In this document: in pieces, positions 3,250 to 19,125 of the stretch
Position numbering within the stretch: position 1 is the first letter of the stretch
Layout of the letters: each line of letters starts with the position of its first letter
Source of the DNA: Botryllus schlosseri
Lineage: Eukaryota
Direction of reading: 5' to 3'
Length of the DNA: 64,000 nt
Assembly: GCA_051294905.1 (NCBI GenBank)
Contig: CM119382.1
Location: forward strand, 11,842,001 to 11,906,000
Program-made: the position numbers and the translations under genes
The notes under the pieces: model-generated
What the model saw: only the letters and a program-made list of their open reading frames with translations
Database searches by the model: none
Told to the model about the DNA's origin: nothing

Positions 3250-5045
3250 ATGGCTCACACCAATGGCAGGGTTATGATGAGAGACTCCTGCGCGTCAACA
3301 GCGTACTCACCAGCCAGTTTCGCGGGAACGGACGGTATCCGGGATACTACGACATCAGCGCCTCTCGACGACAAAAGCGTGGAGGAATTGGACCGCATTA
3401 TGGACACGCTGACCACGCTAACTAGGGACTCGGCTAGAGTCCGCAATTGCAACCACGAGAAATACGCGTTGCCTTCGCCGGAAGACTCCCTATCAAAGAC
3501 TTACCCGGAACAAACATCTACTTCATTCACCAAAAACATCGCGACTGTGTATCCGACACCGGTGTCCCCGTCGATACCGCCACCTACCACGTCACCGCCT
3601 CAAACGCCTATGCAGCACCAGAGGAACTTCACAGCCCACCCTAAAATCATGACGCTGGCGTCATTAACGCCAAAGCAGTCGATGTACACGGCCACTAGAA
3701 GCGACGCCAGAAACCCGGCTACCATGCCGCGACTGCCTGCGAATCCGTACGAAAATACCAGTATACTACACGGCAGTCATGTCACGCCGCGTTCTAACGC
3801 GTTACACCCGAACGTGGAGCACACCAACCCGTTTCCTCTAGTTCCGGACAGTCCGTACGTGAATAAGCACCCATCTGTAGGCGACGGCGGCGGCCTATGC
3901 TTTTTCGGGAGCGCGCCTTTGCCTGCAAACCCCCCTGCGAATACCGGTACCCCTCGCGCCGCCCCAGAACAACAGAGCCATAACAACACCACTCCCGCGA
4001 CAGATAATAGCAATCGCAATGATATGAACAATATGCGATCGTTTCGCGATGTCACTTCATTCCACAGGCCTGATAACCAGTCGCAGGAAGCGCACACTTT
4101 ACCGGCGTATAACGAAAAACGCAGCTACCTCAAAAATCTGGAAGAAGGCACGCTGCCTCGGCCTAGAGTCGACTCTGTGAAACAACTCAATTCGCAAAAC
4201 GCAACCCCAGCCACAAGTCGAAAGCATCAACAAAAGCCGAGCTTTACGGAAGATACTTCTGAGACTTTAAGTCGGCTTTCGTTAAGAAGACCCCGTAAAG
4301 TCGGCGGAGCCAAGCGAGCGCCGGGGAAATTCGGAGCGTACAATTTATCGAAATCTTCATCCAGGCATTCGACTACCTCATTCAACTCTTACGATCTGGG
4401 TCGAAATTACGCTTCCGTGTCCACCGCGCCCGCGTCCACCCACGGCCTTATCCAGCACGAGGTGCTACCACACGGTCGTAAAAAACGGCTGCCATCGGCC
4501 CTCGAAAACGCGGAGTCCCCGAGCTCGGACGAAGACGAGGAAAACTGCTGCGTGAAATACGGAAGATTTCTGCACTCGCATGTGTTGGAACTGTTGATTT
4601 TGGTGGCGTTTTTCGCCGGGCTGCCCGCCGGTATCGTGATACAAGCCACGCGGTTTGACACGACGGAACACTTTCAAAAGTATTATGTCTTTTTCGGCTC
4701 TACAATGCTACCGATGATTCTATCTACTCTGACGCCGCTCCTGGTAGTCAGTTCTATGTTAAGCGGCGTTGGAAACCTGACTTGTAAAGCGTTGAAGCGG
4801 TTCACTTCCTTAATATTATTCTATTTTTTGATGTCCACCGTTACCGCTATCGGTGTTGCTATTATGTTTTCTCTTCTACTGAACCCGGCCGCGCCATTGT
4901 CGGCAGTTGATGCAAATTCTACTAATCTGACGACATACGGGAGAATTGTCATAGGAGTCGCCGAAAAGGGGGAATCTATGAACGTTTATGACACGGAGAA
5001 GGACAAGCATATAACGGCCACTGACGAGATATTACGTTTGCTACT
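3250..5045 (+). CDS. SLC1-like exon 1: long disordered N-terminus plus TM1-TM3
   Basis: 607-aa ORF in track; first in-frame ATG at 3250; acceptor ...gcag at 3204; donor CT|gtaagt at 5046. Confidence 0.9.
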
Positions 5046-8000
5046 GTAAGTATAAACGAGCTTTTATATATTCTAGTTTTCAACGCAACAGGCCCATTGC
5101 AAGATGTATGTAGATGCCATTGTAATTAGCGGTGGACTTGAGTACCGGTTAGATGTATTTTTTGCGCCACAAATTACAATCATTATTATCATTACACTGT
5201 TTACAAAGAATTAGACACTAGACATAAATCCTAACATTAGCGGTAACGCTCTGCTTACGCGTAGATTACGGATGTCAGTGTCATGATCTCTGGCAGTCAG
5301 CAACGCTGCTCATTGAGGAATTTGTGAAATCAAATCTTCTCACTTCATGCCATTAAATGCAAAGGAACGAATAATTCTGGTCACCCCCTTTCTCGTTCAG
5401 ATAGGCTTTCCTTTACGAGTAATGAAGTTGGTGGTCTGTGCAATTCTAGTATCACATCAGTGATTATTACATTGATGATTTTGTTACCCATGCTCCCAAT
5501 TTTTATCGCGTTATTATAGCACTATAAATCGTATAGCGTAAGCACTTTCCTCTTGAAATTTCACAAATGGTGTCGATAATGTCCTGTCGTATATCCTACA
5601 ACTAATTTATGTAAGGTCTTTCATTGGACTATTGCAATGCGAAATCAGACCCACATTTTTATCACAGTTAATCCGGCCCCATAAACATTTTTCATACATT
5701 ATCTCTTCGATTCGTCCAAATCACCACTATTTCTGCAATCTTGACATTTAATGATTGCGAAGTGCATGGCCTATTGTGACCGTTACGCGTTGAATAATTG
5801 TAAGTCTTTCCGAGTTAAGTTTCGTAATCCGAGTCGCATCTAAAGGTGACCTTAAGCGTTGACATCACATCCCTGTCTGCTACGTTCACAACGTAATATT
5901 ATCTCCTGTACGAAAATCACAAAACACTGTTTTTCAAGTAGTGGCGTCCATGAGAATTACCTTTGGCGGGCGATGGGATTCCCAGAACTGTTGCGTTCTA
6001 TCGCCCAAAGAAGACGACCGCGTGAGTAAGGCGCTAATTGGAATCATTGCCTGGAAGTATGAGATGAACGTGTCGCAAGTTCATGTATGCGTCGGGTTTG
6101 ATGTAAATACAGCGCAACCACATTCCTTCACGCGACTATATATTCCAAGCTACACGCCGTTCGGGTGATATAGGTATGCATCGCCGATCATACGTGACGA
6201 AATAGAAATACCACTCTGGACACCCCTTACGACAAAATATGTGATGACGAATGTGTTAATATCACAGAATTTCTATTTTAGAATGTTCTTTCCCGGCTGC
6301 GGAGCTCCGAACGTCAGTTACAACGATGGGGTGAGTGAATTCTCTGGCTTCACGACCAGCACTATAGCATATGCGACTTGCGATGGTATGATCAATTTAT
6401 CATAGATCAGTTACCAAGTACAAGGACTGAAGTATGTTTTCCCCGTCTGCACCATTTACACGAGTGGTATTACTCTAGAAATATCTCCAATTGTATTTAC
6501 GCTGTTTCTGAACCAAAATCGCGTGTTATTTGGTGGTAGGTATTATCATTTTTATCAACGAAATGATACCGCAACGTTAACGCAACGTTATTGCCTTGTA
6601 TGACGATGATACGCGTATACAGTTTTAAAATTGAATGTATGAACTATGAATGCAGCATGATCACTGATCACTGATCAGCCATTCTTACATATATATGCCC
6701 TCGCAGTCAAACTCTCTCCCGTTTTAGAAATCGCAACTTCTATGTGTATATCTGTTTAAAACATGGCCCTTGTTTAAAACATGTTTTATATTTGTTTTTT
6801 CAGCCATTACGCAACGAATCTTTAATTGTGACGTCAAAATGGATTGACATTGATAATTGAAAATATATAGGGTAACTATGGCCCCTTGACGAAAAAGGCT
6901 TCCGACCCCTCTCATAAACGGACCAAAAAATATCTTTAACCAGGACTACATCATTATGTAGCATTTCTTACGATCGGCGGTCTATCGTCATCAGAACATC
7001 CATTCCGTACCAATGATCTATATTTACGTGCTATAATTGTTGAACCTACGACGGTTTCGACGGTTCTAACCACTCCATATTATATACCTCGACGATACTG
7101 GGTGCAAATCGTCCGTAGGCTCATACTACAGTTATGGCATAATTATACATCTTTTGTAAACAACACAATTTTGTTACTTTTAAAGCGGCATGTTTTTAAA
7201 AACACTGTTTAAAACATGTTTTAAACAAAGTGTTTTAAAGCAACATTTGTTTTAAATGCAACCATATGCGTACCCAAGTCTCAGTAGAACTATACTACTG
7301 TATTACTTAAACGCTCCGTTCAAGGTATATTTTTCACCATAGGCAAGCGTGCTACCACAGTATTTTTTAGTGAACATCAACTGCATTATGGAACACACGC
7401 CCAATTATCACTTATCATCGGTACATCAGAAATGTAGGTCGTTTTCGTAGTGGTGTCCTCTTCCTGCTTGTCATTTATTAGAACCTCATACTACAATCTT
7501 TTGACGATATGCTTAGTTGCTTACACAATCCACGATTCCAATTCGAAACAAAATTGACGTGCATTTTTTGAAGTCACTGAAAGGGCAGCAATTCTGCATA
7601 GGCTATATGTCGGAAACAAACGTTTCGAAAGGTTCAACAGTTTGAGAACTTAAATCCCACAATTTCAGTCATGCTGGTTGCAACAACAGCCTCTCTGCGA
7701 GAAAGCGATCAACTTCGTGTCTCAATCAATTCAATCAATATATAACTCAATAGCTAACAGATAAAGACAGGTCTCATTCTGAATAAATTCCTTCGTAAAG
7801 ATCAATAGCTCCATTGCTAGCAGAGCAAGAAAGTCGCCACTTGATATTCACAATCAGAATAAAAACTTGAGTCGCAACTACTCTTTACAGTTCTGCAACT
7901 TGTTCGTCATCGCGCTATTTGCCGGACTCGTCGGAATCGGCGCCTCCATTATGAATTTGGAAGGTGGGCCTATTCGTCACGTTCTGTCGCAAATAGGAAT

Positions 8001-11000
8001 GGCCATGTCAAACATGGCAGATATCTTACTGTGGTGAGTATTTTCGATAACACCTTAGTTAGAAGCGGGTATCAACAATGCCGCTTGACTGTATGACTTT
8101 GTCTGATAGTAGATAACAAACGCCATTTAATCGAGCGTGTCGTATAGAGCTGAATTATCATGAAGCATGTTTTAATTACCTGGGTTTTTATACGCGCAGC
8201 GCAAGTATACGATCACAGCATCAATCCGCAGCGCCATAACTCACAATCGCGAGTTTGCTGACGGCTGGCACACACCATGACCTATCGATGACAGCCTTTC
8301 GTCGTTATTGGCGTCTTGACAAAACAAACGCTATCAATTTGCGCTAAAAGAAGTTCTCGTCAGGTCCTTGGGAATCCAAACATTCGAACCGCCGTGAACT
8401 TTCAATGCGAAACATTTATTAGTCGAAGGATCGTGTCGGGCTTGGAAAAAATTCAAGGAGAAACTGACGGCCCAAGTTCGTTATCATTGGGACTTCAATG
8501 GGAAATCGATTATGACGTCAGATGTTTTGATTTGCGAAATTCCAACAGCAGCATGCCACTTCGACAGGCGCTGTAGTACCGGTACTATTTTTAGAGTAGC
8601 AGCAGTCGGGTTATTAAAATGGCACATGTCATGCGGGATTTATCAAATTACTTACCAGAAAATTCCTATTGTGTGAAGTAGGATGCAGTTGTCTTTCAGC
8701 AACTGCGTTCAAGTCGCACTGGGAAATGACCGCAACTCGTTATCAATAGGCGTTTATGATTTTGCACGTGGTGGGATGAGATGAGTGCGAATGGAAATAC
8801 ACTGAGTTGAGATGACAGTATGTGCTGCAATTTCCGCCGAGAATCCACACCCCGGGAGAATACACTATGCTCTAGAGTTCAGACATTCCATTGAAATGAG
8901 CTGCGATTGTGAACTTTAGTGCTTTGTAGACCTACAATGTATATTGGATTTCCCCGATCATCATGGGTAGTCTGTATCCCCCTCAAGATTGAACCTTCAC
9001 TACGAAATCAAGCTGCTGTATAGGTAACGTTCGCGAATCTAGGATTTGCGGTTTTTCTGTTCAAGGAAACTGCGATTCGTCCGCAGATTAACAAAACTCG
9101 GCTTGTCGTGTACAGAGAAACTGCCGGCACATGGTTGAGAATATTCAAAAATAAGCAAAATTTTCTAATCTGACGTCAGTGTAATCAGAATCTCGAGATC
9201 TTATTTGAACCATCCTTTTGAACCTCGGATCAAACGCGGCGGCTTGCCGCAACGGAGTCTGCACTTCGTGCTAAGAGCGAGTCGATTTTCATCGAGTATG
9301 TACCATATCTGTTGTTCCCCAATGCTCGACTCATATATTATGCATTGATTTGTACCTCATAATAAGAAATAACGAGCCGGTTTGGGACCTAGGCTTCACC
9401 ACCGCCATCTGCTTTTGGGTCGACGCATACTGTGTATTGGTTATTGAATAGGCAAAACAGATCAATACCGACATCATTATCAGAGAACGTTACCGCATGG
9501 AGTGCCATAATATGCATAGCTTTATTAACTGATAGGTAGAAAGGGTTGTGTTTTACGACGATCTCAACGGCTGTCGAGATCATAAGGTACCAATAGTTTA
9601 CAATGCTCAATTGATCAACGTAAGGTCGTGGTCGTGGCATATACGATACGGCATTGTACAGTATATCCGCACACGTGGCATAAGGTAGAAGATATTGCGT
9701 TTACTGTATTATACTAAGATCATTTCAGGTGTTAACGTAAAACTTTAACGTGATATTATTATCGTTCGATTAAGCTTCTGTAAATGTCAAGGTTCGGCGT
9801 ATTTCAAAGATCCCAACGCAGCGATGGCGAGAGATGAAACTCGATATTTTGACATGTCACATAAAGACCAATTGCGTTATGACGTAATGAATATAATCGC
9901 TAATTGACGGCAACGGAATTCGGCGGTGTCACAATCCTGCAGGCCTAGCAAACGTGGCAGCAGGATAGCAACTTACAATTTAGATTTTAGAATATACCAA
10001 CCAGAACTCAAGATATCCCTGATACCAACACGCAACATATACCGATAAAACTCACGAATGGTTCCTTCGTTAGGATGGGGAAGTGAAGTGGTACTGTTTA
10101 CATAATGCCGGTTGAACTGTGCCATGAACCTATGTAGTATGCATTTATTGGGTGAGGATTCTTCACGTATTTCAGTTCGTTATGTTATTTTATTCACAAT
10201 GTCTGTGGACTACTTATAAAGCGTCAAAACATAACAGCTCAACTAAATTTACGCTCCGCGGCTCTTTCTCATTCGACTTAGTATACTCCACTCACCGTGA
10301 ATAGGAAATTGGATACATGCTCCACTTGATACTGTGAGAGATATAGCATTACCAACATTTTAGGCCTTAATTTATCACCGGGATCGCGCGAATTGTCACG
10401 CAAACAGGATGTAAATTGAATATGTTATGCGAAAACGCGGGATTAAAGTACTTTCCTACAAATGAAAGAACATCGCATTCAACGGACGTGATGTTAGTTG
10501 TGTGATTAAAATGTAAATGATACCGAGGAGCTCTTCAGAAACTCATGATTTACACGAAAAAATATCAGTGGGCGAAAGGTGCGAATGGCCTCTCCAAATC
10601 TTCGACCCGGGACTGCATGACGTGAATAGTTTTTACTGCCTCAAAATGTATATTGGTGAAGTCGCGATAAGCTTTGTTTAACCTATGAGTAAGTTCAATT
10701 CCCAAACAACCTCCAAGCAGTCAACAAGTCTGCGAGAGTACTGCTTCATAGTATCGCTTTCCTCAAGTCGACAATCTGCCGGCACTCATCTCGATCCAGC
10801 GCGAAAGGCGATCACATCGGCACATCGTTGTTGGAATTTATCGAGCGGGGAATATCTCGCGGAAACAAAGGCGCCATTAGCCAGCGCTAAACACAATCCT
10901 TCTCGCGTGAGAGTGACTGTCCCAAGAAACACTTGGCTGTATTGCGAAATGGTTTAGTGCATGTATATTGTATCACCCTTCCATATACCGCTTTCCATGT

Positions 11001-14000
11001 CTTGTTCGATTGAGTGGAGACTATGGAATATTGGATTGGAATATAGGAATGCAATTATCACTCAGCACGCAAACACAGCTGGCAAGCATACCAGCGCAAA
11101 TTTGAGAAACGACCGCCGTAGACCTATGTAAACCATAATATATGAACTCACGAATGCTATCAAACGTGACGAACCTGATACACCTGGGTAAAATTGGTGA
11201 AAACTACACCACACTGTCGGTATAACCGCAGGTTTGAGCACGCAGGACACTTCAGAAATATCCCTATTATAAGAATATCCGGACACACTTAGGTCGGAGA
11301 TAAGACAGAAGATGATTGTTTACATTTAAATGCTTAACGACAGGCAACGGATACAGCCTGTAGATAAACAACAAGAGACCACACGCCTGCGCGGACTCAA
11401 CAGAGGTGATAGTCGCGACATTATCGTATCGAAATCTCTAATTCGTTTGAGTCCAATCTGTATATTTCGAAAAGAGTTAATAAGTCGATACATACAAATA
11501 TTCCGCTTTAAGCATTGTAATTAGTGTCAAAATAAATCCTGGCTCTAACATTGTCCTGTTCATGATATTCAGTTTCGCTATAGCTCAGACAGTATATATA
11601 GACATCAAAAAGTAGCATTAATACCGACTCAAAATTCATCAAATTACATTGGAATTTGAAGTCATTTGGTTTCTTTATTCCGGCAACACATAAGTATAGA
11701 ATCATAAATATGAACTTAACGGCCATGAAACTCTGGTTCCTTTTGCAACACATTCAGTTCGCTGCATTTAATCGAACGAGCCCTATCTCCACTCAGTGTT
11801 AATACCACTTCCCGCCATACACATCGTTTGCGATTATCTCCGACTAGTACTTGAATAGCTTCACTTGGGATGTATCCTATTAATATTGACACTTGACTTG
11901 ACAAATCTGACGTTACATTGCATCTTGAGACGATTATACGTCCTGTTCAACCGATTCACACACCGCGTATTTGATCTGACTAATGCGATTCAGGAAATCC
12001 TACTCTTACGCCAGCCCTACGTCCGTGAGAATTTGTACATACATTCCCAAATCATAACGTATTCTAGAAATTTCTGAAATTGCATTTTCAAGCCAATGGT
12101 TTCTTGGTATGCGTGAGATTTCCGTGATTTTGATAATTGTTCTCCTTCCTTCACAGTTTTTGCTTTCTGACTTTTTCATAGCCAGCATTGAGCTACTTTG
12201 CGTACGCGCGTGGACACTGGACAGCATGTGCTAGCGATTTATAGTTAGTGCTGAAATAAATGAAAAGCCATTCCATCATTCATACATGTTAAATCAACGG
12301 GCTCTCCTGTGAGAACGACATCGTAATGTTTGTGTAGTTTGTTCAACATTTTACGAACCGTAATAAAAGTCATGTTGTGGAAAAACAGTACCGCAAATCG
12401 CCGAAAAGCTTAGTTGTTGTAATTCGGGAGAAGTGGAACACCTTTACTCCGCGCCGTCCAAGGCCTTCTACGAAGTATGGATTGGTTATTAATAATGCAT
12501 AAGAGCATAAAAACTATACCTTTTTGAACTTATTGAAGATATGGTGCACGTGCAATGGCGTCTAAGAACGGTATAAATTTTTCATGTAGCCTCGTTTACC
12601 CCAATTAATCCAAGATCAATATACATTCATCCGGTAAATATCCTTTCTGGGAGGCGCATTGCATTGACGTGAAGTAGACTACTGCGAATACAAAACTGCA
12701 TATGCATTTTAACGACGTAGGTGTTTGATGATCACAGAAATTCCACAATGTCGTCACACGGGACTGTGTTCTTAACACTTTGACTACGGAGCCTTAAAAC
12801 AACCAATTCCAGACACAGATATTTTGTGATGCGAGTAGTACCCAAGTAGGCCTGACTTAAGTTTATCTTGAACTAGATAATAGGGCTTACGAATGAACTG
12901 AACACTCAGATATATATAGCATGCGCGAGGTTTTTGAATAAGCGTTTCTTTGACTGACGAGTTCCAATTCATCAGGACTATGAGTCCATGAGACACTATG
13001 ATCCTGATGCAACAAGTTCAGCTGGTTCAAGGCAGTAATAACATCGGGCTAGGAATGAAGTTTTCAACCAATGGGCCAATACCGCAGTGGTTTTTGCGAA
13101 GGTGACTACCTTTTTTTAGTAATCTGCTTCCCAAACAGGACCGTGAGTTGAGTAGGTCTGAGTAACGGTGCTGTACCTTCAGTAATTAGTATATTTTGGA
13201 GGGAAATGGCACAGAATAAATATATGTGAAAATTAGATCAAATTCCATTTCGAAGTTACACTAGGATTCAAACTTAGTTTCACCCAACGCGATACGAATT
13301 CAATAGGCCTACACGTCGAACACGCATAGATTTGGATTGGTACACTTATACTTGTTCACTGAATGTATGAATGTCCGTGACGGTATGGTTTGTTACATTA
13401 TCAACAATCTATCTAATTCTATCAGGTACGTCCCGATTGGAGTATTTTTCATCACATCGGAGCTCGTAGCGACGCAAATAAACTGGACAAGTATCGGGTA
13501 CGATTTGCAGTTGGACAAGATTGGGATTGAAAACGCAACAACAAATAGTCTCGAAACAGACGCAATCGTACTCCATCACGCCACCCAGCGATTTATACTG
13601 ACAGTGCTTGCCAGTATAGCAATTCACTGCTTCGTACTGATGCCCATAGTCGCGTGCGTCGTTACGCTGTCGCGGCCATGCGCTGGAATGAGTTTCAGGG
13701 TATCGGGTCCATTGATCGCGTCATTTAGCCTCGGATTCAGGTGAGGAAATAGGTCGAATGGCGTTGAAAAATTCAGATCCACGAATTACTTACCTTTCTC
13801 ATGTTATCAATTTGGTTCCCTCTCTATATATCGTCGCTGTGGAATCAAAGTAGCTATGTCCATTTCACAGATTTTGAAAAAATTACCTTTAAATCAACAT
13901 GACAAAGATAAACAAAAAACATGGACAAGATATGGCCGAAAAAATTAAAATTAAAAAAAAAAAAACTTGACTTTCTATCAATTTGAAAAATGGGTCTCAA

Positions 14001-17000
14001 AATTGGAAGAAATGAACATAACCTACGTTGATTGCACCGCGACGATACATAGATGCGTTACCTGGGTCGTAGACGCAGAGATGGTCAAATTAGTCAGCAT
14101 TTCTACTCAAATAGAATAGAAGTTATGTCGTCGATTTTTCTCAATTACAAGTAGAAATAGCGATTTTCAAGCCATGTCAAACTACATAAAGCAGAGGATA
14201 CAAATTAAAGGCGTGAAAGTACTGAAATAAGTAGTTTTGAAGAAAAGAAGTCGTGGTATTAATCATTTTGTGTTAGTCGCAAAGATGCACGTCACAGTTT
14301 CAAAAGTAATAATCTCCGATCAACTGCTAAAAGTATGTGACTTTTCGATCAAACCTACTTTTATAAATATCCAAGCACTTTTATTACCCTTATTTCTAAT
14401 CCCACTTCAAGTAAAATTTCGACATGTCTTGAAAATTGTCGTGTCTACAGTTCTGCTTGTACTTGAGTAGACGTATATGTAGTTGCTTCTACTCGAGTGC
14501 CAAAAGATGACTAATTTGACCGCCTCGGCTTGTAAGTGAGTAATTATTTACAGCATTAGGTCTACACATGAATTACTATGCATTGAGCGCTTCTCCCTTG
14601 CTGTGAAGTGTAGAACACTGGTAACAACAATTTCCTACTTATTTAGTGACTTATGCATTCCGCTGACACTGCGAAGTCTATTGAACACGAACGGCTTGTC
14701 GCGATGCTGTCAATCGCCCTCGCCCATGGACCGAAGAATCGTTCGAGTCTCGACGGTGCTGGGCGGTATATTTAACAGAGCCGGGACTGCGATTTTTCTG
14801 ACGTGCTCCGCGATGTTCCTGGCGCGAATCGAAGGACGGCAATTGCACGCTGGCTCGATTGTAATCTTCGGGTAAGAAGCGTATTGTATATGAGGTGGTG
14901 TAACGAGATCTTTTTCCGAGTACTTCAACGGATTTTCTCTACTTGTACTATCATGAGAACCGAGCGAAAAGTCATGTGTCATGGTAACTGAATATATTTT
15001 CGAAAATTTCACTTATATGTTGTGTCATAGGTCATTTGGCGTCAGTCGTGAAGATGTATACCCTGTCATTTAGAAAATGGCCAGTTCCGCTTAACTGCTA
15101 AGAAAATGCGACTCATTCACAGGATCGAACCTTTTGAAACTACTTATTCCAGTTCTTTTCATATCTTTATTTTCAACAAATACTAATACTGCTACTATAG
15201 GTGTAATATATTTATGGTCACACTTCATCTGACTACTTTGACCTCGGGTATATCACTGTTGTTTCAGATTTTCGTCTATGGTTACGTCTGTGACATCTCC
15301 TACTGGGCGGTGGTTTAATCGGTTCAACCCATACATGAGGGGGATCGTTATCAATCTATCTACGGCGGGCCTGACAGCGCCCGGAGAAATACCGGAGAAG
15401 CTTTTGTGTTTCTGGGCTATGTAAGTTCATGACATTCGCGCAATAATATCTTCAAAGTGAACAATTAGGAGTCATAGTCGATCAGGTCAATAATTATCGA
15501 TGCAAGAGAGTTTATCGAAGTAAGTGATACCACGAAGCCACGTTGCGTGATCTTGTTTGGTCATCCATATTGGATTTAGATTATAAACGTCACAATAAAT
15601 TAACGGTAAACTTTTTCTCATCAGGAGCCGAATAGCAGCGTTAGCCGACACGTTTGTTGACGCGCTAGGAGCTCACGTATTACACCACTACTGTAAATCG
15701 TCGATGAAGGACACGAAAGATTGCAAAGAGGCGTGCCAGGACGAAAATAGCACCGGTAAGGGTTTGCTGACATTCGGGTGATTGAAGGAACGCTCTCAGC
15801 GGTTGTGCATCCTTTATGGAATCAAATTTGAATTCATCAAAGTCTTGCGAATCAAGCCTCGCATTTCGAAAGAAATGTATTCCTAATGATAGCACACTGC
15901 GTTTTTACAGCCATGAATGAAATGAAAAAGGTGTGGACAAACAGTTGTAGTACGCTACACAGGTCTATGAAACATGATGAATTACAAACGAAGTCATTGA
16001 TTCAGTGTGATCGATGTCACTGAAATTTCTCCTTCATAATAACCAATGATTCGCTAACCAATGGTTTTACGAAATCACGTATTGAACAACAACGCGTGCC
16101 CTTAGCACGCGAAAGCTGGTATTCGCAGTAGGCCTACTCAAAAGCGAGGTAGCGAACGAGACTGTGATGTTCTGGCCTCTGGGTTAACCTCAGCAAGTCT
16201 GACACTCGCACACACACACACCGATCCCATCACCTGCGCAAGTTATCGATATCTTGATAAACCTAATGCAAAGCAAATCTTAATTACAGAGCATGAAAGC
16301 GACATGTGTAACACCATATCATCGTGACAGCTTGTCTGTCCGTGTCACTCATTGGCTAATACGAAACACAGTCGACTCGGAAGAAGAGATTAAGATTCTC
16401 TCATGAAATTCGGCAGATTGTTCCGAAGCGTCCGCGACATAAATATATGTCCTTTCCGAGCCATACTTTGGGAATCACTGTTATTGGCATGTAAATTAGC
16501 TGTCTGGTCTAACGATAAGTTTGTGTGCATGCTTTTTCCAACTTGGGTCTCAAAATTAGATTAGGAAATCCAAATCTCCGACACACATCGATATCTTTCA
16601 AATCAAGTCAAGGTATGTCGGTGGTGGGGATTACACATCTTCAAACCCAAGTTGTGTATACGGGATTAAGCTTCAAACTCAGATGAAATACAGATTATTC
16701 GAGGCAAATTCCTCTCTCATCCCTGTCAGTGATACGAAGGTTCTGCACGTAAGCAAGTTTAAGATAATCCCAGACCCACGTCCAAAATCATACTCATACT
16801 CAATACTCCTCGATTTCTTATGTTTCAACTCTTATCTGTCCTAAAGACATCGCTAGATTGTACTTGCAATGACCGTATTTTATTCATTTAATTTCTGAAT
16901 ATATTTAATGTATCCGCTACATTTGTTAATCAAAAAATTGAGTGTAATCATGGCCGGGGTGATTGGTCTCTGATGATTCTGTTATAACGTGCCTCCCGTC

Positions 17001-19125
17001 TTTACCTTTCTTGTCTCTATATCACATTTCGCGCAATTGCATTTTGTTAAGTATGTTATTGACAAATTCTGTTTCTCTGCCTCAGACTCCAGCACCGCCG
17101 GAATCAAGATCCGCGAAATCAGCCCCGCGAGCAACACCGTCCCGGCAAGATCCACGGGCGGCGACACAAGCGATTACGAAGAAGCGCCGTTGCTTTTCAG
17201 CAGGTTATTATCGCATTCTGTTTCGGGCAGGAACCGGCACCTGGCCGAATTCGATGAATTCAGTGCGAAAAAGGGGCGGCCGCAAACCGCGTTGTCGTGA
17301 GCGAGGTATGCGTGGGCTCACCGGAGCGTGACTTTGCTTGCTGTGAGTTCATGCATGACCATAACCACATGATCATTTGCGCAAAAAGCAGTTATTATTA
17401 TGATTATGGATTTGGATTTGTGAAGATTTTGAACTGATTGAAGGACTGTAACTACAAGTCGTTTTTTGTGGTGTTTTGAATTGACGAAGATAGCAATTAC
17501 GCAAAATAGAAAAGAACGACACTATAGAGAGACCGGCTTTGGAATGGAACTGAAAATGTTCAGTTTTCATGTAACAGTTGAATGAACTTCCGAGACATTG
17601 CCTGTTTTGGACTTGGCTTCGTGCCAAGAGACTTCTGGCTTTGGAAATATTAATCCATGGTCACCGTCTCAAAGGTGTAATAATATTTTATACCGCAATT
17701 CTGAGATCATCTCATGCCCCCATTTTGGGTGTTTCAATCATGGTTTCATCACACATTGGCAGAAATATTTCGGTCGATTCGTCGTAGCACGACCCATTCA
17801 CGTTACGATTCCGACGTGGCGTCACAATTTCCAGAACATGTAACATGAATGTTATTTGATTAAGGCCAAGAACGCCCGTTTAATACTGCGTGATCGTGTG
17901 CTGTTGAAGAGTCATTCGGGAATGACGCAAATCGCTTGTATTTCTTCGATACGTTTATCGTAACTACTCGAGCCGTTCCCAAGGCATCGTGACGCACCAG
18001 CCCCACTCTGGCATGTCTGAAGCATAGGTGGAGAAACTGTATATAACACCTTTGTTAGAAATGTAAATTGACTCAATGATCCACGGAAATGATAACAACT
18101 GTAATCAGCCACCGTCACGAAGCCAACCGCTCGATTCACGGGGCTTTTGTTTTGCTGACTTTCAGGCCCAGACCGGCCGAAGCATTTTCACAATCATCGA
18201 CCATTCACATACACATAGGCCTACACGCGTATTTCTTCGCGATTGATTTGATCTCGACTCTTCCAAATTATATCTATCAAAAATATCTATCTCCAGATAT
18301 TTTATTTTGCTGAAGCGAACAATGTACCATTCAGCTAGTTGTTTCTCATTGTTCGGAACAGCGATGCCATTCATTATCCCTTTTGCGATGTGTACGACTG
18401 TAGAGGTCAATAAGGTGGTGGTGATCATGGGCGTAGTAGCCGTGGCTTGTAATGACGACAATGACTTGACATCACAAGCACGGATGACATGGCGACATTA
18501 CTCTGTGCAAGGCAAAATTGGCAAGAGATTTGAACATAAGTTGTTGCTTCAATTGTTTCTTCACCAGTGCCTTGCATGCAGTGCAGGGTTGCGATACGAA
18601 AAGTGGTCGTAAATAGTCCGCAATGACGTGATGTTATGTGATCCGAAATTTTATTTGGGGGAGGCTTCCTCGGCTATCAAAGTTGGTAATTCCTCTCCCA
18701 TACCTGACGCTAGGTATATCTGATACGATTGTGGGGATGCGTCAAGGATGGAAAATTCAGTAGAGGTGAACAAATTTTCAACAATCAAACGTCACGTCAC
18801 GGTGTATACGCTCCCAAAATCCAAAATCGAAGGAGCAAGATCGCCAAAACACGGCGATATGAATGACAGCTTAGTGCGGATCCAGGCTGTTAGTTTAACA
18901 CTGCGATCTACTGAATCAGGCTGATAGCTAACGGAATTTCTTCCATCCAGGTCTGCAGAGGGCGGAAATGAATCGAGCTCAATGAACAGTCGGAACGATG
19001 ACGTATTCTTGCCCAACCGACCTCAAGAGACTCGCCCCTTCGCCCAGCAACAGGACGGCAGGCGTGGCAACAATCATCACGTCCGGACTGCCCAGAATGG
19101 AGACGTTTCTTTTGTCACGTTTTGA
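3250..19125 (+). CDS. SLC1A: Divergent SLC1-family (dicarboxylate/amino acid:cation symporter, EAAT/ASCT-like) membrane protein, 9 coding exons, ~1065 aa
   Basis: Exons 3250-5045, 6282-6330, 7891-8033, 13426-13740, 14647-14871, 15268-15420, 15625-15755, 17086-17296, 18951-19125 join in frame through GT-AG introns (3198 nt). Segments align to the SLC1 fold: TM2-3 (PLLVVSSMLSGVGNL), W|YVPIGVFFI (WYAPxG), MDRRIVR...GGIFNRAGTAIF (TM7), DALGAHVLHH (TM8). Symbol is family-level only. Confidence 0.88.
6282..6330 (+). CDS. SLC1-like exon 2 (L|MFFPGCGAPNVSYNDG), 49 nt
   Basis: tttag acceptor and gtgagt donor; MFFP matches the SLC1 NMFP position; phases 2->0 fit neighbours. Confidence 0.75.
7891..8033 (+). 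CDS. SLC1-like exon 3 (TM4c-TM5, FCNLFVIALFAGLVGIG...DILLW)
   Basis: ctctttacag acceptor, gtgagt donor; ends TG| of the conserved Trp. Confidence 0.85.
13426..13740 (+). CDS. SLC1-like exon 4 (YVPIG...TM6, HP1a)
   Basis: Within track ORF 13337-13744; atcag acceptor, gtgagg donor. Confidence 0.88.
14076..14528. mobile_element. ~450-bp MITE (family A, TIR ~CAGAGGTGGTCAAAGTAGTC) in SLC1-like intron 4
   Basis: Left CAGAGATGGTCAAATTAGTC, right GACTAATTTGACCGCCTCGG; internal ctactcaa/acttgagtag repeats; no TSD recovered. Confidence 0.6.
14647..14871 (+). CDS. SLC1-like exon 5 (HP1b-TM7-HP2a, NRAGT)
   Basis: Within track ORF 14603-14875; tttag acceptor, gtaaga donor. Confidence 0.88.
15268..15420 (+). 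CDS. SLC1-like exon 6 (HP2-TM8a)
   Basis: gtttcag acceptor, gtaagt donor; open in phase 2->2. Confidence 0.8.
15625..15755 (+). CDS. SLC1-like exon 7 (TM8b, SRIAALADTFVDALGAHVLHHYC)
   Basis: ctcatcag acceptor, gtaagg donor; aligns to DRLRTTTNVLGDSLGAGIVEHL. Confidence 0.82.
17086..17296 (+). CDS. SLC1-like exon 8 (cytoplasmic tail); may instead end at TGA 17298-17300
   Basis: Pyrimidine tract plus ctcag acceptor; frame of track ORF 16989-17300; candidate donors at 17297 (gtgagc) and 17306 (gtatgc). Confidence 0.72.
18951..19125 (+). CDS. SLC1-like terminal exon 9 (SAEGG...DVSFVTF*)
   Basis: atttcttccatccag acceptor; open in phase 2 to TGA; AATAAA 72 nt downstream. Confidence 0.62.

Follow-up and report, generated by a model that had tools for sequence, protein, structure and literature searches.

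What does a member of the SLC1 family do when the residues that bind its ions and its substrate have been rewritten? SLC1 transporters are a textbook case of strictly conserved ion and substrate sites, and the question is raised by a gene in a 64,000-nucleotide stretch of the genome of the tunicate Botryllus schlosseri (assembly GCA_051294905.1, contig CM119382.1, positions 11,842,001 to 11,906,000 of the forward strand), below called the window. A preliminary description of this DNA had flagged four exons at 13426-15755 as an SLC1 homologue with altered sodium- and substrate-binding motifs. These are real exons, but they form only the C-terminal third of a gene that runs from 3250 to 19125, and the description missed a conserved N-terminal tail of 430 residues, predicted to be disordered, as well as the C-terminal tail, both of which bear on the idea that the protein is a sensor or scaffold. 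The gene is single-copy and transcribed, encodes a protein of the SLC1 fold, is under purifying selection and, as far as our searches reach, is confined to a few tunicates. Its product is very probably not a Na+-coupled amino-acid transporter.

Replacement of the ion- and substrate-binding residues

The gene has nine exons, A to I, which are listed further below, and the residues of its product were matched to those of GltPh. In a phmmer comparison of exon E with ASCT1, EAAT1 and EAAT3, the sequence NRAG fell opposite NMDG. Exons F and G alone gave only chance matches in a phmmer search against the PDB, and as they show no similarity of their own, their homology is anchored by shared introns and by a full-length alignment. 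The complete orthologue from Styela clava can be aligned with EAAT3 from one end to the other (E=6.5e-22), which puts helical hairpins 1 and 2 (HP1 and HP2) and transmembrane helix 8 (TM8) in the proposed register, and MAFFT agrees with this register from S/D onward. Since the intron at ..DWLL^DR of the paralogues (^ marks an intron) is shared, S895, with which exon G begins, corresponds to D394. The equivalences are given below as the GltPh residue, the residue of the window protein and, where relevant, the state in the orthologues, namely that of Styela and that on a contig named L031.

N310: N811; H in both orthologues
M311: R812
D312: A813; G in Styela
Residue between D312 and T314: G814, within N811 R812 A813 G814 T815
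T314: T815; S in Styela
SSS of HP1: F-S-D769
HP2 tip GAAG(I/V)P: ..GRWF....P..R, 5-7 residues longer
D390: F891; F or M among the sequences
W after D390 in TM8: W, kept
D394: S895
R395: R896
R397: A898
T398: A899
N401: D902
D405: D906, kept
Y89/T92/S93 of TM3: Y525/S529/T530, kept; TT in L031, ST in Styela

M311 contributes to Na2 and touches the substrate. The NMD loop as a whole (N310, M311 and D312) coordinates Na1-3 and the substrate, D394 serves as ligand of the amino group and R397 as that of the side-chain carboxylate, both being known specificity determinants, and N401, among the family's best-conserved residues, binds the main-chain carboxylate (PMC12668577). The window gene lacks NMDGT in TM7, which reads NRAGT in the window protein, HRAGT in L031 and HRGGS in Styela. 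The serine-rich HP1 tip SSSATLP is absent as well, its place being taken by GFSDLCIP in all three species, and HP2 has S(P/L)(T/G)GRWF....P..R instead of GAAG(I/V)P. In TM8 the ligands D394, R397 (T or C in ASCTs), T398 and N401 are all replaced, in the orthologues too, and only D405 is kept, while the Na3 ligands of TM3 are retained.

The peptides and coordinates quoted in the preliminary description were exact, with NRAGT at 14774-14788, GFSD across the junction of exons D and E, the HP2 string TSPTGRWFNRFNPYMRG in exon F, and CFWAM followed by SRIAALADTFVDALG across the junction of exons F and G. The substitutions it had proposed (M311R, D312A, D390F, D394S, R397A, T398A and N401D, with D405 kept) hold in the phmmer comparison, the Styela alignment and the shared introns, and T314 is indeed kept in the window protein. 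Its statement that N310 is kept applies to the window protein, whereas both orthologues have H, so this is a species-specific state. Likewise, conservation of NRAGT among orthologues extends to R and G, while the positions N/H, A/G and T/S vary.

A Pfam SDF search of the assembly showed that the genome holds five other SLC1 loci, and all paralogues for which the relevant exons were recovered have the canonical NMDGT, SSSATLP, GAAGVP and DR.RTT.NV.GD. The replacement of D312 (Na3), of the amino- and carboxylate-binding residues and of both hairpin tips, together with the existence of these canonical paralogues, argues against Na+-coupled transport by the window protein.

Orthologues and selection

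Relatives were searched with exon A, using a word-indexed search and then HMMER over all 1.84 billion representatives. Only four relatives fell below an E value of 1e-30: three open reading frames from SRA-derived (Logan) contigs (P0001/L031, P0002 and P0003/L032), and one protein of Styela clava (P0004, XP_039266469.2, "uncharacterized protein LOC120341931", 1109 residues). Exon A shares 39-64% identity with P0001-P0004, and all its other matches were generic matches to TM1-3 with E values of 1e-8 or weaker. L031 carries orthologous exons A-H, all of them open and with the same splice positions. Over 960 codons, the window and L031 share 65% amino-acid identity, with proportions of non-synonymous (pN) and synonymous (pS) differences of 0.21 and 0.83; synonymous sites are saturated, so that the synonymous rate is not estimable and we report only that pN is far below pS. 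The HP2 exon (F) is the most conserved one, with 84% identity to L031 and a pN of 0.08.

The derived motifs GFSDLCIP, GGIF(N/H)R(A/G)G(T/S)A, TSVTS..GRWF and SR.AA..DT..D..GAH are kept in the orthologues. RNA variants, which come from divergent haplotypes or strains, comprise 14 synonymous and 14 non-synonymous changes, none of them in these motifs. The preliminary description had taken the gene to be under selection, and the saturated pS against a low pN and the conservation of the rewritten motifs agree with this; it had also envisaged an untranscribed locus with a dN/dS near 1, whereas the locus is transcribed and pN lies far below pS. The substitutions at M311, D312, D394, R397, T398 and N401, in the HP1 serines and at the HP2 tip have themselves been conserved, and we strongly infer that Na+-coupled amino-acid transport has been lost.

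Gene structure and transcripts

The gene model was built from splice sites, loose ends of RNA contigs and orthologue exons. Its nine exons span 3250-19125 and encode a product of 1034 residues without an internal stop, consisting of an N-terminal region of about 430 residues, an SLC1 core from about 431 to 925, and a C-tail of about 110 residues. All introns are of the GT..AG type. The exons are as follows.

Exon A: 3250..5045, + strand; ATG, predicted disordered N-tail of about 430 residues with conserved short motifs, then TM1-TM3 (residues 431-598)
Exon B: 6282..6330, + strand; (L)MFFPGCG..., TM4a equivalent, TM3-4 loop short, placed by AG/GT sites and frame
Exon C: 7891..8033, + strand; TM4c-TM5 (FCNLF...ADILLW), 83% identity to the L031 orthologue
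Exon D: 13426..13740, + strand; end of TM5, N-glycosylation sequons in an extracellular insertion, TM6, HP1a as far as GFS
Exon E: 14647..14871, + strand; HP1 tip and HP1b (S^DLCIP), 10-residue insertion with conserved RCC, TM7 with NRAGT
Exon F: 15268..15420, + strand; HP2 equivalent with a rewritten tip longer by 5-7 residues (GRWF at 15305-15316), followed by the first part of TM8 (CFWAM)
Exon G: 15625..15755, + strand; TM8 (S895 R896. A898 A899.. D902... D906; 15626-15676), then the start of the C-tail
Exon H: 17086..17203, + strand; C-tail with conserved SDYEEAPLLFSR, which fits the acidic dileucine pattern (residues 969-974)
Exon I: 18951..19125, + strand; last coding exon with conserved GNESSS..NDD.VFLP and C-terminal SFVTF, stop codon TGA at 19123-19125

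Exon A lies within a 607-codon open frame and contains a Pfam SDF match of the assembly, 8.5 kb upstream of the flagged exons. The joints 13740 to 14647, 14871 to 15268, 15420 to 15625 and 15755 to 17086 occur in spliced contigs of the RNA runs X1, X2 and X4, which come from two studies, and also in raw reads of run X24, confirming that the four flagged exons are open and cleanly spliced as had been predicted. RNA loose ends at 13425 correspond to the last 30 bases of exon C, and mapping of the loose-end sequence at exon H showed that it continues into 18951, the start of exon I. One transcript contig of run X4 measures 2888 nt, of which 2034 nt lie 5' of exon D, in keeping with exons A, B and C plus a short 5' untranslated region. 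Exon B has no direct cover by RNA reads and is supported by its AG/GT sites, its frame and its counterparts, a homologous exon of 49 nt in L031 and one like it in L032. The orthologue of exon D is L031:8903-9217. The C-tail encoded by exon H is conserved in L031 and Styela, and the C-terminus encoded by exon I is identical in Styela isoform X1. The N-tail and the HP2 exon match only themselves in the 495-Mb assembly, and the gene is thus single-copy. No alternative exons with canonical motifs, a possibility raised in the preliminary description, were found in the RNA data at the locus.

Several further observations concern the transcripts. Styela isoform X2 (P0052) ends by read-through of the exon H donor (LLFSR^LLNATV...), and in the window an open read-through frame past this donor (17204-17300) could give a short C-terminus without SFVTF. 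Patches of intron D at 13831-13869, 14140-14171 and around 14975 have a high RNA depth in X4 and X24 with loose ends on both sides, and resemble fragments of a dispersed repeat or some other transcript, not exons of the gene. In intron H, low-depth contigs (3-4x) of X1 and X2 at 17727-18020 carry an 8-bp insertion, TGATCGAC, after 17890, and may stem from antisense or intronic transcripts or from carried-over DNA. Over coding exons D-H (13426-17203), the RNA of X4 and X24 differs by about 4-5% from the window, whereas that of X1 and X2 is about 99% identical, a difference that points to a very high level of polymorphism or to cryptic lineages that share one species label.

Fold and descent

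Membership of the SLC1 family was examined with Pfam PF00375 (SDF), which has a curated cut-off of 27.9 bits. A six-frame search gave 41.6 bits on TM1-3 of exon A, above this cut-off, and the Styela orthologue scored 86.6 bits; in a search with single exons, exon E was the sole one matched, with 19.6 bits (E=5e-4). The core of the Styela orthologue (residues 450-975) was folded with AlphaFold2 as a proxy for the window protein, using an alignment in which exon pieces of the orthologues were combined with bacterial homologues and fish ASCT1, and from which exon G fragments, scattered by MAFFT in the preceding alignment, had been dropped. The model has a mean predicted local distance difference test score (pLDDT) of 73.9 and a predicted template modelling score (pTM) of 0.77, with low confidence in the HP2 segment (pLDDT 38-50), in the TM3-4 loop on the extracellular side and in the stretch inserted after HP1b. 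Its best Foldseek matches are outward-facing EAAT3, ASCT2 and EAAT1 (E around 1e-12, target-normalised template modelling scores of 0.76-0.79), and the Styela core is accordingly predicted to adopt the outward-facing SLC1 fold. In the protein Atlas only generic SLC1 clusters were matched, and a homologue search gave no match with the Styela core and mainly bacterial DAACS proteins with the mixed alignment.

Human EAAT3 and EAAT1 (SLC1A1 and SLC1A3) and ASCT1/2 (6x2l, 8cua, 5llm and 7p4i) thus share PF00375 and the predicted outward-facing fold with this family, and TM2, TM3 (Y..ST), T314 and D405 are retained in the window gene. They differ in that NMDGT has become N/H-R-A/G-G-T/S, the SSS of HP1 has become FSD, and GAAG(I/V)P of HP2 has become a longer S..GRWF....P..R. 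The residue after NMDGTALY is E or Q in EAATs and ASCTs and Leu in the window family, which also has an N-tail of 430 residues, a C-tail of 110 residues, and extra residues inserted between TM5 and TM6 and behind HP1b.

A comparison covering same-genome paralogues found four intron positions common to the gene and its canonical paralogues, namely W^Y, a site within the HP1 serine motif, the point where the TM7 exon ends, and WLL^DR, and the Styela orthologue scores higher to EAAT3 and EAAT1 than to prokaryotic homologues. Together these findings indicate that the gene derives from a metazoan SLC1 gene by strongly accelerated evolution. A phylogeny of 369 columns (LG+G4), in which the paralogue rows are partial pseudo-sequences assembled from tblastn pieces, places three sequences on a stem of 1.67 substitutions/site; this stem attaches among metazoan and bacterial SLC1 sequences with supports of 23-40, and no sister group is claimed. 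Canonical paralogues (on C11, C2, C5 and C8 of the assembly, G000) have an intron after TM2 (..SLITG^), whereas the divergent gene is intron-free from its ATG through TM3, which points to intron loss or a remodelled 5' half. Two of the canonical genes lie in tandem about 15 kb apart (G000:C11:22850372-22872502). The blocks compared hardly differ between them (branch lengths 0.04-0.05), which indicates that they arose by tandem duplication not long ago. A search of the accessible literature for the Styela locus and accession found no paper on this gene, and the metazoan SLC1 surveys that were read cover neither tunicates nor such a variant.

SLC1 proteins free of Na+ coupling do exist among the relatives of GltPh and GltTk, namely H+-coupled or uncoupled bacterial and ancestral homologues of the same fold (PDB 9bgy-9bh0). 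The signature of H+ coupling is a hydrophobic residue in place of [T/S]92, with M311L and D405N, and an unchanged substrate site (PMC12668577). The window protein keeps S/T at 92, and has Arg at 311 and Asp at 405. Retention of T92/S93 and D405, combined with a rewritten substrate site and D312, indicates that it did not follow the H+-coupled bacterial route.

Cytoplasmic tails

The N-tail is rich in S, T, P and N, and is as conserved as the membrane core when compared with L031 (66% versus 65% identity, pN 0.224 versus 0.204). The N-terminal 455 residues of Styela are predicted to be disordered (pLDDT 43.6, pTM 0.15), apart from two helices, one over the invariant LDELDRIMDTLSTLSR island and a short one in RSYLKNLEEG. 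Many such invariant islands and short motifs are found between the orthologues. Conserved elements of the C-tail are SDYE(E/D)APLLFSR, which fits the sorting pattern [DE]xxxL[LI], GNESSS..NDD.VFLP, and the identical C-terminus SFVTF.

Possible functions of the divergent protein

The best explanation overall, held at somewhat less than even confidence, would be a transceptor- or scaffold-like SLC1 protein, possibly with an uncoupled anion leak. The mechanism that might underlie it, a self-neutralised pocket and Na+-independent sensing coupled to the tails, is by itself a slightly more tentative proposal. In such a pocket, Arg812 of TM7 would point into the old substrate/Na+ site and, as we conjecture, pair with Asp902/Asp906 of TM8, while Asp769 of HP1 would face the Arg/aromatic HP2 tip GRWF. 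A transport domain with a self-satisfied pocket would need no Na+ and could serve as a ligand- or conformation-sensing module, the state of which may be read out or regulated via the N-tail motifs, the putative dileucine-type sorting signal EEAPLL of the C-tail and the C-terminal SFVTF.

Both halves of this proposal have analogies in other families. A built-in positive charge at a Na+ site is found in the LeuT-fold proteins ApcT (Lys158) and CaiT (Arg262), where a basic side chain likewise occupies a position that touches the Na+ site in Na+-coupled relatives, although the fold is different and the Arg of the window protein was placed by sequence alignment. Transporter-like sensors with long cytosolic tails are known from the APC and MFS families, such as yeast Ssy1 and Snf3/Rgt2, and SLC38A9. 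These resemble the window gene in combining an altered or lost transport site with cytosolic extensions that carry conserved interaction motifs, but they belong to unrelated families with other folds.

Several points weigh against a sensor or scaffold. The fold model is that of the Styela orthologue and not of the window protein, its HP2 has a pLDDT of 38-50, and the C-terminal half of the gene is covered by three sequences. The dileucine, PDZ-type end and YxN assignments are pattern matches, and bona fide transporters also carry long regulated tails, which therefore do not discriminate between a sensor and a carrier. In addition, the conservation of HP1, TM7, HP2 and TM8 suits a carrier of a new substrate equally well.

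Such a carrier is the strongest alternative, albeit a rather unlikely one. The protein would then be a Na+-independent elevator carrier or exchanger for a solute other than an amino acid. Its more acidic pocket might suit a polar molecule such as an amine or a small cation, or its relocated Arg might hold an anion, and the tails would serve ordinary regulation or trafficking. This would fit the finding that, within the core, conservation peaks at the old substrate site (GFSDLCIP in HP1, GGIF.R.G.AI in TM7, TSVTS..GRWF in HP2 and SR.AA..DT..D in TM8), as well as the intact fold with its TM3 Y/S-T residues and D405, and since D394 and R397 determine specificity, altering them would alter the class of substrate. 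However, the tip of the HP2 gate has become longer, bulky and charged, and no candidate substrate can be named.

It is less probable still that the protein is mainly an anion channel, conducting through the interface of scaffold and transport domain known from EAATs and either constitutively open or gated by something other than Na+ and glutamate. The scaffold parts (PL..SSML.G of TM2, and TM4c-TM5 of exon C) are 72-83% conserved, and by analogy with EAAT channel models a transport domain in no need of a ligand could visit intermediate states freely, but a channel leaves the conservation of the old substrate pocket unexplained. That the protein is an ordinary Na+-coupled amino-acid transporter despite its motifs is highly improbable: its Pfam membership, its fold, and the retained T314, D405 and Na3 residues of TM3 would agree with this, but none of D312, D394, R397/T, T398, N401, the HP1 serines and the HP2 tip has been kept, and five canonical paralogues in the same genome already fill the role. 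A pseudogene that decays while still transcribed, or an artefact of assembly or annotation, might be argued from the extreme divergence (the stem of 1.67 substitutions/site) and the lack of similarity of exons F and G on their own. The probability of either is negligible given 1034 codons without a stop, splice sites used in the RNA of several studies, and orthologues that keep the derived motifs and have diverged little at non-synonymous sites, with synonymous ones saturated; both readings were rejected, along with that of canonical alternative exons, based on RNA splicing, open orthologue exons and a pN far below pS.

The gene might, although we hold this somewhat more loosely than the transceptor proposal and its mechanism, encode the first natural SLC1-fold protein without any substrate- or Na+-coupled transport. 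In it, an Arg built into the NMD loop and paired with new or retained TM8 aspartates would replace ions and substrate, and the elevator would have become a sensor, a scaffold (transceptor) or a ligand-independent anion channel wired to the long tails with their conserved motifs, as a chordate (tunicate) innovation. For tunicate biology, the analysis flags an unannotated gene family, which is listed in Styela clava as an "uncharacterized protein". For the SLC1 family, the conserved co-rewriting of NMD, HP1, HP2 and TM8 amounts to a natural experiment on the elevator fold without Na+ and amino acid, on whether built-in charge can replace bound ions in the SLC1 fold, and on how transporters become sensors or channels.

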